Below, piece by piece: positions 2,150 through 7,453 of a DNA stretch of 64,000 bases. How positions within the stretch are numbered: position 1 is the first letter of the stretch; every line of letters starts with the position of its first letter. The notes below the pieces were generated by a model. That model was not told the DNA's origin. It saw only the letters and a list, made by a program, of their open reading frames with translations, and did no database searches. The position numbers and the translations under genes are program-made. Where the stretch lies: the IMG/VR virus record IMGVR_UViG_3300027996_002186, positions 310,001 through 374,000 of that record; one strand, written 5' to 3'.

Positions 2150-2656
2150 ATGAAATACATAAAACCATATATTATTTTTGAATCAAAAGAATTATCTGAA
2201 TATTTTGATATTTTCATAAAAAGTGATATCATCGATGATGATAATTACGTAAATAGTTTACGTCAAAACAATCTTTGGTTTAGAGAAATAAGTCTTCAAG
2301 ATTTCATGGGGAGTAAATATAAAAATTTCAGACAAAAGAGCGATTCAGTAAGAAGAAAGGAATTTAAAAAGTATACCGTCTCATCTACACCATATTCTCG
2401 TGCTAGACAGAAAGAAAATTGTTTATGTGTGCAAATTGGATCATCCTTTAATATAGATGATGTTGAAATTTATATCAGAAGAATGTTAGATTATGCTAAT
2501 GAAAATGGATATTCTTATGAAGTTAGAAAAGAATTACAAGCTAGTCGAAAAAGTATAGATATAACAAATCTAATTAATCGAAGACTCAAACGTAAGAACA
2601 ACAGGGTTAATACACAGAAGATTCTATCTATTCAAATTTTATTCTATAAAGAATAA
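2150..2656 (+). CDS. Hypothetical protein with capsid-targeting-like leader
   Basis: Starts MKYIKPYIIFES. Confidence 0.6.
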   Translation: MKYIKPYIIFESKELSEYFDIFIKSDIIDDDNYVNSLRQNNLWFREISLQDFMGSKYKNFRQKSDSVRRKEFKKYTVSSTPYSRARQKENCLCVQIGSSFNIDDVEIYIRRMLDYANENGYSYEVRKELQASRKSIDITNLINRRLKRKNNRVNTQKILSIQILFYKE

Positions 2657-2708
2657 ACTTTTACATAATCAAATACTATATACTATCTACTCATTAAAAA
2701 AGTAGAAA

Positions 2709-2985
2709 TTAATTACAAATTAATTTGGTAGAACGAAAGTCTATCCGTATATTTGTAAGACAATTAAAGAGAACCAGTAGTTTGCGGTTTGTTCCATAAA
2801 ACTATAATACGTCATACTTTAATTGTTTTTTGAAAATAATTATAAATAAATTAGGTAGAAGAGAAAAGTCTCCTTATATTTGTAAGAACAAACAAAGACA
2901 ATGAAGTCTTCAAAAAATAAAAAAAGAAATTATAAATAAATTAGGTAGAACGAAAAACTCTACTTATATTTGTAAGACAAACAAA
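2709..2985 (+). promoter_or_regulatory. Three tandem near-identical Bacteroidota-type promoters
   Basis: Repeat unit AAATWAATT(T/A)GGTAGAA..N..TATATTTGTAAGA; -7 boxes TATATTTG at 2748-2755, 2875-2882 and 2965-2972, each 20 nt after TTTG/TTAG. Confidence 0.75.
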
Positions 2986-2992
2986 ACAAAAT

Positions 2993-3088
2993 GGTCGGTT
3001 CGTCTAGTGGCTGGTTTTCTCTTGAGAGAATCTTAGGACGGTAACCTTTTCGGGTTACAGACAGAGTGTTCGATTCCTCTACCGACTA
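2993..3088 (+). tRNA. Atypical tRNA-Glu-derived element 1 (D-loop hairpin insertion, non-canonical anticodon arm)
   Basis: Acceptor GGTCGGT/ACCGACT; D-stem GTC/GAC with TAGTGG; ~22-nt hairpin insert 3011-3033; anticodon arm GTAACC-TTTTCG-GGTTAC; T-loop TTCGATT with a bulged stem; no encoded CCA. Confidence 0.7.
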
Positions 3089-3090
3089 CA

Positions 3091-4020
3091 AGAAGTTACT
3101 CAACGGAGTAACATATGTTCTTTGAAATGTTAAATACACAGAAACTCGACTTCGGTCTTAGAGTTCTTCGGAACAGAGTGGATGTAGGGCGGCTTATAGT
3201 CCTTAAATAAACCACGAAAGTGGGATAAAGTGGATACAATGTGTAAAATGTGTCTGCGGCTCGAACCTAGTTTGAGCTCGAGTAAGCAAGTGAGATATCA
3301 CCAATCTTGAAGTACCGAGGGTAACTCCGTAGGGAAATGGATTCGTGACTGGGCAATTTGTAGGTGTTCAGTTGAGGTCGGAAGACCAATAAGAATAACT
3401 CATAGAGATTATTACAAGAAGTGTTGACTATCCGGTTAATACCATTGTGTGTCTCAATCTGAGAGGTATCTCAAAGTCGAAAGACAATTCTTCGTACAGG
3501 TGGTGCTGTTGTAGAACATTAATCTCTCTACCAAGAGAGTAGATTGTAGCAGTCTAACAAACGTACAGTTGTGATGAAGATATCTTAAATGGTTGTGGTG
3601 GAGGCATCACACGGAGAAGTCCAGTATTCTTGAGACCAAAAATTTTGAGAGCTGAGAGGTAACCACTCCTTCGAAACAATCTACAAACACTTAAATTTAA
3701 TTTTAATTCAAAACTAAAAATAAATCGAAAGTGTTACCTAGTTACTAGTGAAAGGTGACTACTTAGTCGTGAATCGTTCACGGCCACGAAAGCTCGAAAG
3801 GCGGACGTGATTTCACTGAAAAACTTATAGGGTGTCGAAACCCGAATCAGGATGCGAATCTTGAATAAGCAGAGTAAGTGGAGAGTAATTAGTAACTCAA
3901 GAAGTGGTTAGTCTAACTAACCGTCACTGACAAGATACCGTTCACAAAAGAAACGGTGGATAAGTTGGGAATTAATAATCCAACTAAAGACTTGTCACTT
4001 AAAGATGTAATCTCAGTCTT
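3091..4020 (+). ncRNA. Large ornate structured RNA, GOLLD-like
   Basis: No ORF; GC content far above flanks; many UUCG/GNRA-capped hairpins (3148-3157, 3163-3174, 3212-3223, 3476-3485, 3848-3863); long-range pairs TGACAAG 3928-3934/CTTGTCA 3991-3997 and CTGAGA 3652-3657/TCTCAG 4011-4016; tRNA-adjacent phage context and size fit GOLLD; family assignment from recall only. Confidence 0.7.
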
Positions 4021-4028
4021 TTTTATAT

Positions 4029-4123
4029 GGTCAGTTCGTCTAGTGGTGGGGTCTCTTTTAAGATACTCCGAGGACAGTAACCTTTTCGGGTTATAAACAT
4101 TGGTTCGAATCCAATACTGACTA
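4029..4123 (+). tRNA. Atypical tRNA-Glu-derived element 2 (same architecture as element 1)
   Basis: Acceptor GGTCAGT/ACTGACT; D-loop hairpin insert GGGGTCTCTTTTAAGATACTCC (4048-4069); anticodon arm GTAACC-TTTTCG-GGTTAT; canonical T-arm ATTGG-TTCGAAT-CCAAT. Confidence 0.72.
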
Positions 4124-4201
4124 CAAAGTTTTCGTAGTGGTTAACTTCTCTTTAATTAGAGGGTCTGTTTTGAACAGTTTTGATTACCTAACATCATCTA
4201 T

Positions 4202-4239
4202 AAACCCATCAATAGATTTATTTCATTGATGGGTTTTTT
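4202..4239 (+). terminator. Intrinsic terminator closing the RNA locus
   Basis: AAACCCATCAAT / ATTGATGGGTTT followed by a T-run. Confidence 0.75.
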
Positions 4240-4286
4240 ATTTATATACAATTTGTAAACTTTTCCTTTTAAAATAAAATAATAGT

Positions 4287-4898
4287 ATGGGAAAAGAGAT
4301 GTTGAAAAATAAAGAGCTTAGGATGATGGGGTTAGTGCCTTACAACCTATCAGATATACAAAAAGGTATTCAATTTGGACACGCTGTTGTTGAGTATAGT
4401 CAAATGATTAAAAAATCCAATAAAATTACTCATATAAATAGATATGAAGATTGGGCAGATAACTGGAAAACATTTATAATATTGAATGGTGGTACATCAA
4501 ATCATTCGGTTAATAGGTATCAACCAAATGAGGAATTTATCGGGTCTATGGAAACAAATCTAGAGACTCTAAAAAAGGCCGGAATACCAGTTGGTGTTTT
4601 TTATGAACCAGATCTAAATGATATGTTATCGGGTATTGTTTTCGTAGTTCAAGAAGAAGTTTTTAATAAAAAGGATTATCCTGATTTTGAAGATTGGGTT
4701 ATTGAAAATTATGGTGGTTTATTAAAAGTAGATACTGATAATCAATCATATGCTGAATCATCTAAACAACTATCGATGATGATTAAATATTCAGAGGATG
4801 AACATGATCAAAAAATCTATAATAAATGGGTTGATTTCGTTGGTGGTAGTAGTAACGCATTTATGAAAGAATTTTTAATAAATTTTAGTTTAGCATAA
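4287..4898 (+). CDS. Peptidyl-tRNA hydrolase 2 (Pth2)-like protein
   Basis: QFGHAVVE, FIILNGG and FYEPDLNDMLSGIVF motifs as in phage Pth2-like proteins. Confidence 0.6.
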   Translation: MGKEMLKNKELRMMGLVPYNLSDIQKGIQFGHAVVEYSQMIKKSNKITHINRYEDWADNWKTFIILNGGTSNHSVNRYQPNEEFIGSMETNLETLKKAGIPVGVFYEPDLNDMLSGIVFVVQEEVFNKKDYPDFEDWVIENYGGLLKVDTDNQSYAESSKQLSMMIKYSEDEHDQKIYNKWVDFVGGSSNAFMKEFLINFSLA

Positions 4899-5338: not shown

Positions 5339-7453
5339 ATGGAAGAAAATAAAGAGAAAGAATATTTGGATAAAGTTGAAGAAGTGAAAGCTTCAATTGA
5401 TGATGGTGGTGATGAGGATAGATACATTTCTTCTAAGAAACCAGACCCGAAATCTAAAACTCCGGTATTAGATACTTATAGTCGTGATCTAACTAAGATG
5501 GCAGAAGATGGTAAGCTTGATCCAATTGTTGGAAGAGAAAAGGAAATCGAAAGAGTTTCTCAAATTCTTTCAAGAAGAAAGAAAAATAATCCGATTCTAA
5601 TCGGTGAACCAGGGGTTGGTAAATCTACTATCGCAGAGGGATTAGCACTTAGAATAGTTCAAAGAAAAGTTAGTAGAATTCTTTTTAATAAAAGAATTGT
5701 AATGCTTGATTTAGCTTCTATGGTAGCTGGTACTAAGTATAGAGGACAGTTTGAAGAAAGAATCAAAGCTCTTATGTCAGAACTTGAAAAAGATCCTGAT
5801 ATTGTTCTTTTCATTGATGAAATTCATACTATTATCGGTGCTGGTGGTGCATCAGGTTCACTTGACGCATCCAATATGTTCAAACCAGCATTAGCTCGTG
5901 GTGAAATACAAATCATTGGAGCAACTACACTTGATGAGTACAGAAAGCATATCGAAAAAGATGGGGCACTTGAAAGAAGATTTCAAAAGGTAGTTGTTGA
6001 GCCAGCAACACCAGAAGAGTCAATTCAAATTTTAAGTAACATACTTGATAGATATGAAGACCATCATAATGTTACTTATACACCAGATGCTATTAAGGCT
6101 TGTGTTGAATTAACAACAAGATATATGAATGATAGATTCTTACCAGATAAGGCTATTGATGCTCTTGATGAATCTGGGGCTAGAGTACATATCGCTAATA
6201 TAATTGTTCCAAAGGAAATAACTTCCATTGAGAAAAAGATTGTCGATATTAAAGAAATGAAGAACGATGTTATACGTTCTCAGAAATATGAAGAAGCGGC
6301 TAAACTAAGAGATGTTGAAAGACAACTTAATGAATCTTTGGATATAGCAAGACAAGCTTGGGAGGATGATTCAAAAAACAATAGACAAACTGTAACTGAT
6401 GAAAATGTTGCTGAAGTTATTTCGATGATGACTGGTGTACCTGTTAGTAAGGTAAACGAGAAAGAGAATACAAAACTTGGAAAGATGAAAGATGTAGTAT
6501 CATCTAAAGTTATTGGACAAGATGAGGCTGTTAAAAAGATTGTGAAAGCTATTCAGAGAGGTCGTGTTGGACTTAAAGACCCGAATAAACCAATTGGTTC
6601 ATTTATGTTCTTGGGACCTACTGGTGTTGGTAAAACACAATTAGCCAAAGAATTGACCAAGTATCTTTTCGACTCAGAAGAGTCTTTAATTAGAATTGAT
6701 ATGTCAGAGTATATGGAGAAATTCGCAGTGTCTAGATTGATTGGAGCACCTCCGGGATATGTTGGTCACGATGAGGGTGGACAATTAACTGAAAAAGTTA
6801 GAAGAAAACCTTATTCTGTAATCTTACTTGATGAGATTGAAAAAGCTCACCCAGAAGTATTTAACTTACTACTTCAAGTATTAGATGATGGTCAATTAAC
6901 TGATTCACTTGGAAGAAAGGTGAACTTCAAGAATACGATTATTATTATGACATCAAATACTGGTTCTCGTCAATTAAAAGATTTTGGTAATGGTGTTGGA
7001 TTTTCAACAAAAGCAAAACAATCGTCTAAAGGTGAACACTCCAATGCGGTTATTGATAAAGAGTTGAAGAAAAAATTCGCACCCGAATTCTTAAATCGTG
7101 TTGATGATATCATTATGTTTAACTCTTTAGATAGAGAAGATATTAATGAGATAATCAAGATTGAAGTTGCTAAAGTTGTTGAAAGAGTTGAGCAAATGGA
7201 ATTCACACTTGACTTTACAGACGAGTCTATCAATTATATAGCTGGTGAAGGATTTGATCCTCAATATGGGGCTAGACCTTTGAAAAGAGCAATTCAAAGA
7301 CACGTTGAAGATGTTCTAACAGAAGAAATCATTGAATCTAATCCACCTAAAGGATCTAAGTTAACACTTGATTATGATAGTGAAAATGAGAAAATGATTG
7401 TTCTTACTAAGAAGAAAAGAGCTACTCGTAAGAAAAAAGAGGGTGATGAATAA
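5339..7453 (+). CDS. clpC: ClpC-type Hsp100 AAA+ ATPase lacking the N-terminal Clp_N domain
   Basis: Two Walker A motifs (GEPGVGKS, GPTGVGKT), FIDEIH, UVR motif KYEEAAKLRD, GVGF ClpP-docking loop, GARPLKR. Confidence 0.9.
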   Translation: MEENKEKEYLDKVEEVKASIDDGGDEDRYISSKKPDPKSKTPVLDTYSRDLTKMAEDGKLDPIVGREKEIERVSQILSRRKKNNPILIGEPGVGKSTIAEGLALRIVQRKVSRILFNKRIVMLDLASMVAGTKYRGQFEERIKALMSELEKDPDIVLFIDEIHTIIGAGGASGSLDASNMFKPALARGEIQIIGATTLDEYRKHIEKDGALERRFQKVVVEPATPEESIQILSNILDRYEDHHNVTYTPDAIKACVELTTRYMNDRFLPDKAIDALDESGARVHIANIIVPKEITSIEKKIVDIKEMKNDVIRSQKYEEAAKLRDVERQLNESLDIARQAWEDDSKNNRQTVTDENVAEVISMMTGVPVSKVNEKENTKLGKMKDVVSSKVIGQDEAVKKIVKAIQRGRVGLKDPNKPIGSFMFLGPTGVGKTQLAKELTKYLFDSEESLIRIDMSEYMEKFAVSRLIGAPPGYVGHDEGGQLTEKVRRKPYSVILLDEIEKAHPEVFNLLLQVLDDGQLTDSLGRKVNFKNTIIIMTSNTGSRQLKDFGNGVGFSTKAKQSSKGEHSNAVIDKELKKKFAPEFLNRVDDIIMFNSLDREDINEIIKIEVAKVVERVEQMEFTLDFTDESINYIAGEGFDPQYGARPLKRAIQRHVEDVLTEEIIESNPPKGSKLTLDYDSENEKMIVLTKKKRATRKKKEGDE

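Follow-up and report, generated by a model that had tools for sequence, protein, structure and literature searches.

GOLLD RNAs are among the largest non-coding RNAs of bacteria and phages, and since 2025 the family has been known to form an RNA-only cage larger than the ribosome. The env-38 GOLLD, an 833-nt RNA from the marine GOS scaffold JCVI_SCAF_1096627009515, assembles into a D7 14-mer nanocage (Kretsch et al. 2025, PMC12286853; structure listed as PDB 9MEE in PMC12990946), and the 700-nt GOLLD of Streptococcus agalactiae (Sag) forms a dodecamer, its 3' domain alone giving mainly a decamer (PMC12990946). The known assemblies range from 10- to 14-mers, with the 5' domain modelled as the cap and the 3' domain as the ring of a half-shell, and 14 env-38 copies close into the D7 cage with the A/U-rich linker inside (PMC12286853, PMC12990946). 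Here we analyse a 64,000-nt stretch of the IMG/VR virus record IMGVR_UViG_3300027996_002186 (hereafter the window), in which positions ~3091-4019 of the + strand very probably form a two-domain, env-38-like GOLLD gene of a marine jumbo phage. This RNA adds a member to the known family and is not a new RNA class; its interest lies in its context, a very large marine phage with Bacteroidota-type promoters, in its expression and in the architecture of its flanks.

A sequence-only reading of the window had proposed a GOLLD-like RNA at 3091-4020 and predicted that an Infernal search would find the family over its 3' half, as indeed it did. In a cmscan that compared the entire window with each of the 4227 Rfam families, GOLLD (RF02032) matched at 3612-4019 (+) over the complete model (1-416 of 416), with 278.4 bits and E = 2e-78 against a gathering score of 150 bits, and this was the sole match of the window at the gathering threshold. 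A permissive search of 2500-4400 (E up to 5) returned no match to ROOL, introns or other large RNAs, adding only a tRNA at 4029-4123 and a chance-level Phe_leader (E = 3.1). Size and phage context likewise fit GOLLD, of which the genome carries one copy. The matched 3' domain (3612-4019, +) comprises the P13/P14 hairpin (3612-3673), an A/U-rich linker (J13/15, ~3674-3739) whose length and sequence vary among relatives, and a terminal hairpin at 4002-4020. In an alignment of 73 sequences its 87 pairs are 97.4% canonical and 69 of them covary, versus 24-31 in controls with slid partners, and two non-nested, pseudoknot-type pairings (3754-3759/3923-3928 and 3657-3660/3736-3739) covary as well. 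Because the model match and the G-U-containing covariation agree, the RNA is assigned to the + strand.

The general description of the locus given by the sequence-only reading was also borne out. ORFs (open reading frames) of 50 aa or more are absent from 3091-4020, where the longest reach 40-47 aa and lie mainly on the minus strand, and the flanks are dense with ORFs of 118-704 aa. GC content is 0.37-0.42 over 3000-4050, versus 0.23-0.31 in the flanks and 0.294 in the genome. Hairpins with UUCG and GNRA-type tetraloops are common, as had been noticed (for example GACTTCGGTC at 3148-3157, GTTCTTCGGAAC at 3164-3175, CACGAAAGTG and GTCGAAAGAC). The 3'-half motifs taken to mark GOLLD could be located (GAGAGTA at 3882-3888, TAACTCAAG at 3893-3901 and GGTGGATAAG at 3956-3965), and so could the expected ending GTAATCTCAG at 4007-4016, followed by a T-run at 4019-4024. 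Folding is far above chance, both in the covariation of the 73 sequences and in an RNAalifold consensus of an 11-sequence alignment, which holds 187 pairs, 103 of them with double compensatory changes.

The sequence is present in many seawater and brine DNA runs and in at least eight marine metatranscriptomes. Logan contigs of four RNA runs, one per study, were compared with window positions 2400-4800. With zero mismatches, their contigs cover 3163-4007, 3161-4004, 3165-3805 plus 3824-4006, and 3146-3938; contigs of 831-845 nt cross both domains, and depth is zero over 2400-3145 and 4008-4800 in the four runs. Recovery of the RNA without its flanking genes speaks against carry-over of DNA and in favour of a discrete, stable RNA. 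GOLLD thus accumulates in the sea as a discrete, stable species of at least ~860 nt and its neighbours do not, which is direct evidence of such accumulation in the ocean. A negligible chance is left to other identities for the locus, be it a large RNA of another class (ROOL, a group I/II intron, tmRNA, a piece of an rRNA or of RNase P), a feature acting at the level of the DNA or a protein-coding one: large size, scarcity of ORFs and GC enrichment are generic traits of structured RNAs, but only GOLLD and a tRNA emerge in 2500-4400 from the 4227 families even at E up to 5, ORFs do not exceed 47 aa, G-U-containing covariation suits a + strand RNA, and the sequence is found in RNA libraries without its flanks.

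Because the Rfam model spans the conserved 3' domain only, the 5' ~520 nt called for separate evidence. They consist of a leader (3089-3160, +), with a conserved hairpin at 3095-3112 and the motif GTTCTTTGA at 3117-3125, found in 65 of the 73 unique GOLLDs, and of the 5' domain itself (3161-3611, +), supported by collinearity, covariation, blocks common with env-38 and RNA contigs. Of the 14 viral contigs retrieved with a 16-nt word from the 5' half, 11 contain the whole GOLLD 3' domain as modelled by Rfam. The word precedes the 3' domain by 390-440 nt in each of 14 measured GOLLD sequences, among them those of the window, L001 and L002. A two-block pattern of the 5' domain retrieved 99 contigs, and an alignment profile yielded 88 full-length two-domain RNAs of 798-960 nt, of which 73 are unique. 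Covariation support is as strong for the 5' half as for the 3' half. In the 11-sequence alignment the 5' half has 105 pairs, 97% canonical, with 60 covarying versus 8-15 when partners were slid by 1-3 columns; in the 73 sequences it has 102 pairs, 97.1% canonical, with 75 covarying versus 22-27 in the slid-partner controls. A pairing of 4 bp moreover connects the two domains: positions 3359-3362, in a hairpin loop of the 5' domain, pair with 3681-3684 at the beginning of the linker, and all four positions covary across the 73 GOLLDs (GUAG/CUAC, GUGG/CCAC, GCAG/CUGC, CCGA/UCGG and ACCG/CGGU). A further long-range pairing proposed by RNAalifold (3120-3123/3986-3989) does not vary in any sequence and is therefore neither supported nor refuted.

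The env-38 sequence, taken from the supplement of PMC12286853, has two blocks in common with the 5' half of the window RNA, at 3274-3300 (25/27 identical) and 3370-3406 (35/37), where none would be expected by chance; a third env-38 block is unmatched in the window within three mismatches. In addition, an invariant GAAA loop at 3479-3482 occupies the position of the conserved GAAA loop (L11a) of env-38. The blocks and the loop position therefore assign the RNA to the two-domain subclass of the cryo-EM structure, and its 5' domain is, on these sequence matches, homologous to the 5' 'cap' domain of env-38. A search of the viral contigs with an env-38-specific 20-mer gave a single match (L059), a chance occurrence in coding DNA, and env-38-specific words never occurred more than once per fetched locus; a close relative of env-38 was not found among these loci.

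One could suppose that only the 3' 408 nt are GOLLD and that the 5' ~520 nt are an unrelated spacer or a separate upstream RNA, since the Rfam model ends at 3612 and the literature describes GOLLD 5' regions as less conserved. This is very improbable, given the unbroken single RNA-seq contigs that run from 3161-3165 to 4004-4007, the fixed 390-440 nt spacing of the 5' motif in 14 sequences together with the 88 full-length loci, the 75 covarying pairs among 102 in the 5' half, the sequence blocks common to the env-38 5' domain, and the covariation of 3359-3362 with 3681-3684, which joins the 5' domain to the linker. The 5' half (about 3091-3611) is part of the same RNA as the 3' domain. Rfam has no covariance model of the 5' domain, and the 73 unique full-length homologues offer ready material for building one.

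Since both domains are homologous to those of env-38, the window RNA would be expected to behave in the same way. We consider it likely that its 5' domain forms a cap and its 3' domain a ring, and that the RNA self-assembles into a closed cage, probably a 14-mer, with the linker (3674-3739) inside. As to what such a cage might do, our best guess is a tentative one: it could act on the tRNA or translation economy of the phage during infection, by scaffolding, storing or sequestering a tRNA-related partner. It is suggested by the constant coupling of GOLLD to tRNA, tRNA-like and tmRNA genes.

That coupling takes an unusual form in the window. The tRNA linkage that the sequence-only reading named as a trait of GOLLD RNAs is present, but the partners turned out to be two atypical tRNA-like elements in place of regular tRNAs, and ARAGORN calls no tRNA in the window, missing both. 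tRNA-like 1 (2993-3088, +) has a tRNA-Glu scaffold with a 24-nt D-loop hairpin and a bulged T stem, and tRNA-like 2 (4029-4123, +) has the same scaffold with a 24-nt D-loop insert and a perfect T arm. They are direct repeats (D2) with 81% identity, and both keep the acceptor stem, including G1-U72, and the D stem of the phage tRNA-Glu(UUC), element 2 also its T arm. The anticodon arms read GTAAC-CTTTTCGG-GTTAC in element 1 and GTAAC-CTTTTCGG-GTTAT in element 2, each with an 8-nt loop that is one nucleotide longer than the TTTTCAT of the phage's own tRNA-Glu. RNAfold closes this arm as a 7-bp stem with a UUUC loop, and the centroid fold of element 2 is a cloverleaf with an extra D-loop hairpin. 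The Rfam tRNA model accepts element 2 only, at 43.5 bits and with a 24-nt insertion, and element 1 fails; neither element has the 7-nt anticodon loop, the standard D-loop and the recognition by tRNA finders that mark canonical tRNAs.

A strict pattern search for such elements returned five loci; a looser pattern returned 35, mostly chance matches in coding DNA, and was set aside. In the copies from other phages the D-loop insert measures 0-43 nt and contains a conserved CUCU/AGAG hairpin, and the acceptor stems covary. The elements belong to a tRNA-Glu-derived family with an 8-nt loop (C-U-N-UUC-A-G), for which ARAGORN reports tRNA-??? with 2- or 4-base anticodons; its members include L002:3847-3919, L006:873-948, L028:1052-1126, L031:851-924, L052:10799-10872 and window positions 2993-3088 and 4029-4123, and some of them have a structured extra D-loop arm of 16-43 nt. 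Members of this family may decode, evade anticodon nucleases or act as mimics. We discarded the idea that such elements are exclusive to GOLLD loci, as ordinary tRNA arrays of phages contain the 8-nt-loop form too. It seems rather unlikely, if worth stating, that the two elements are dedicated, non-decoding partners of GOLLD, serving as handles by which RNase P/Z would free the cage RNA from the operon, and possibly as tRNA mimics that join the cage in countering a tRNA-targeting defence of the host. Their acceptor stem is indeed intact and their T arm largely so, and they have a structured D-loop arm and an anticodon arm one nucleotide longer. If true, GOLLD and a tRNA mimic would form one functional module, which would offer a first handle on the role of GOLLD.

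Upstream of tRNA-like 1 lies a direct-repeat family (D1) of three copies, each with a promoter-like site (-33 TTTG or TTAG, -7 TATATTTG) resembling the Bacteroidota-type pattern -33 TTTG / -7 TAnnTTTG. The first site, P1 (TTTG-N20-TATATTTG, 2724-2755, +), stands in the first of the three stacked ~70-nt repeats and is an exact match of this type; the second, P2 (TTAGGTAGAA...TATATTTG, 2851-2882, +), belongs to a motif class found genome-wide; the third, P3 (2941-2972, +), has its -7 box TATATTTG at 2965-2972 and ends 20 nt before tRNA-like 1. The simple pattern TTTG-N19-21-TAnnTTTG is only marginally enriched in the window (6 versus 2.4 expected, a count reached by 3 of 100 shuffles) and was not retained. 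The genome has 12 sites of the extended class TTdGGT-N17-19-TAnnTTTG, versus 1.2 expected, and three of them are stacked at GOLLD. A second tandem pair of this class, TTdGGT-N17-19-TATATTTG(TAA), lies at ~88.5 kb of the genome (88457-88582). The class agrees with the -33/-7 consensus of Bacteroidota, which suggests a host from this phylum, probably among the marine Flavobacteriia, and P1-P3 are putative promoters on this sequence evidence. In ~38 of 73 related loci this box precedes the conserved 5' motif of GOLLD by 21-64 nt. Relatives have the box either directly before the leader or separated from it by a tRNA-Met or tRNA-like gene; such an upstream tRNA-Met ends 25-29 nt before the conserved motif. 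An unusual tRNA-like gene of 88 nt (L001:2910-2997) stands under this promoter class in LR745206; ARAGORN calls it ???(gt), and it has a weak tmRNA-like match. Right after P1, a closed long hairpin (2756-2832, z = -3.6) is followed by a U-run; it could represent a small RNA of ~75 nt or else terminate the gene block upstream.

Downstream of GOLLD, a U-rich spacer of 9 nt (4020-4028, +) leads to tRNA-like 2, which is followed by a ~80-nt element of four hairpins (4125-4204, +) that starts with AAGTTTTCGTAGTGGTTAACTT and belongs to no Rfam family. Eight GOLLD loci contain this element, placed between tRNA-like genes, and three of its hairpins show compensatory changes; in most relatives a further tRNA-Glu-like gene comes after it, and it may be a small RNA co-transcribed with GOLLD. 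The block ends at a strong intrinsic terminator (4202-4242, +), whose hairpin of 14 bp precedes a U-run (-16.8 kcal/mol, z = -5.3 versus shuffles). No promoter box or terminator was found in the window between tRNA-like 1, GOLLD, tRNA-like 2 and the ~80-nt element, which makes co-transcription followed by processing the simplest model. One non-coding operon would then be transcribed from up to three sigma-A-type promoters and run through tRNA-like 1, GOLLD, tRNA-like 2 and the ~80-nt element to the terminator. Such a defined promoter-to-terminator unit provides a natural setting for the cage-forming, env-38-like type of GOLLD.

We infer that GOLLD would be released from this tRNA-punctuated operon. 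The specific route we envisage is evenly poised between holding and failing: the 3' end would arise at the U-tract and/or by RNase P cleavage at the 5' end of tRNA-like 2, and the 5' end by cleavage after tRNA-like 1 and trimming of the leader. Of 28 related loci in which a tRNA follows GOLLD on the same strand, 19 have it beginning 7-17 nt past the GOLLD end, a spacing that fits help from RNase P in setting the GOLLD 3' end without proving it. The commonest neighbour of GOLLD is tRNA-Met, and a tmRNA lies directly upstream in seven loci. The layout that recurs, a promoter or tRNA, a ~25-nt leader, GTTCTTTGA, GOLLD, a 7-17-nt U-rich spacer and a tRNA, opens a possible shaping of GOLLD by tRNA-processing enzymes to direct testing.

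It is nevertheless quite possible, if somewhat short of probable, that the tRNA-like flanks are bystanders, and that GOLLD takes its ends from its own promoter, the U-tract and ordinary RNases next to independent, possibly decoding genes of a tRNA island. Genes of the 8-nt-loop tRNA-Glu-like kind do occur in GOLLD-free phage tRNA arrays (L028, L035, L038, L048, L052 and L054), and in the loci L005, L010 and L011 GOLLD is bounded by a promoter immediately before it and a terminator after it, with no tRNA; a U-run ends every GOLLD, whether or not a tRNA follows, and the RNA contigs start 55-75 nt past tRNA-like 1. Such independence sits less well with the arrangement in the window, where gaps of 0-9 nt and no promoter box or terminator separate the elements, with the 7-17 nt spacing of the downstream tRNA in 19 of 28 loci of divergent phages, and with the variants carrying an extra D-loop arm, which as seen are almost confined to GOLLD loci.

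Several points count against the account of a processed, cage-forming RNA given here. Logan contigs are strandless and their low-coverage ends are dropped. Positions 3091-3145/3160 are uncovered by the RNA contigs, so that the leader is perhaps not in the mature RNA; it may be removed or under-sampled in the RNA data. The extent of 3091-4020 proposed by the sequence-only reading therefore stands as described except for its start at 3091, as RNA-seq contigs begin at 3146-3165; the mature 5' end may lie ~55-70 nt inside that start, and is somewhere between 3089 and ~3165. The tRNA-like elements are missing from the RNA data, which could reflect loss of small structured RNAs during library preparation, and neither a GOLLD-tRNA precursor nor an RNase P product is seen in any read. 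Some relatives have a promoter and a terminator of their own and do without a tRNA on both sides; tRNA flanks and processing at them are therefore not obligatory. For the cage, multimerisation and its exact stoichiometry hinge on the peripheral helices P9, P11a-c and P21b.

The genome record has 312,709 bp and is rated 91% complete, the window being positions 118099-182098 of its minus strand. A stretch of 9,340 bp (genome 177985-187324) is 100% identical to L008:1-9340, part of a 483,262-bp IMG/VR contig, and the nearest GenBank relatives are uncultured phages of 634-642 kb. From this identity, in line with the size of the relatives, the real genome is probably larger than the record, which would be a fragment of a genome of at least 483 kb. 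Only four canonical tRNAs are present, and a tmRNA search found none in the genome, unlike several relatives. In many relatives a phage-encoded tmRNA gene (tag peptide ANVDYSTEYYAVAA) is found no more than 2-3 kb from GOLLD or immediately before it (L005:6705-7091, L010:6768-7152, L011:9631-10016 and L012:2678-3064; also L060, L066, L069, L115, L130, L133 and L145). Upstream of the GOLLD locus, positions 229-714 encode an AAA_33 ATPase of the polynucleotide-kinase-like type, with matches to polynucleotide-kinase and RNA-ligase-family PHROGs; a kinase near tRNA-like genes hints at RNA repair. Downstream lie a hydrolase (phrog_3668, 4287-4898) and a ClpB/ClpC-like double AAA+ ATPase (5339-7453).

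RNA 3' ends defined by RNase P at tRNA-like structures are known from MALAT1-mascRNA and from tRNA-punctuated polycistronic transcripts. The window resembles them, by analogy only, in that a long structured RNA directly precedes a tRNA-shaped, potentially RNase P-recruiting element; those precedents, however, are eukaryotic or organellar. ROOL is also a large RNA of phages and prophages found near tRNA islands that forms an RNA-only cage (octameric or hexameric), but it differs in sequence and fold and has no match in the window. GOLLD is also reported from Mycobacterium tRNA arrays, where tRNA genes surround it in DNA of mobile or phage origin (Morgado et al. 2020, PMC7549688). There a tRNA can sit within J13/15, whereas the window RNA has a short A/U-rich linker and the tRNA-like elements lie outside its ends. 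Sag GOLLD belongs to the same Rfam family and has the conserved 3' domain P14-P27, but it lacks P9, P11a-c and P21b, forms 12-mers and resides in a Firmicute prophage and not, like the window RNA, in a marine phage. With env-38, finally, the window RNA has in common a marine origin, two domains, a full 3' domain, a homologous 5' domain and an adjacent tRNA, env-38 lying downstream of a tRNA-Met like the relatives L004, L009, L015 and L016. It is longer than env-38, its 5' part measuring ~450-520 nt versus 420, and its neighbours are tRNA-like elements derived from tRNA-Glu, not a tRNA-Met. Judged from the 5' blocks that resemble env-38, the window RNA looks like the complete type of GOLLD.

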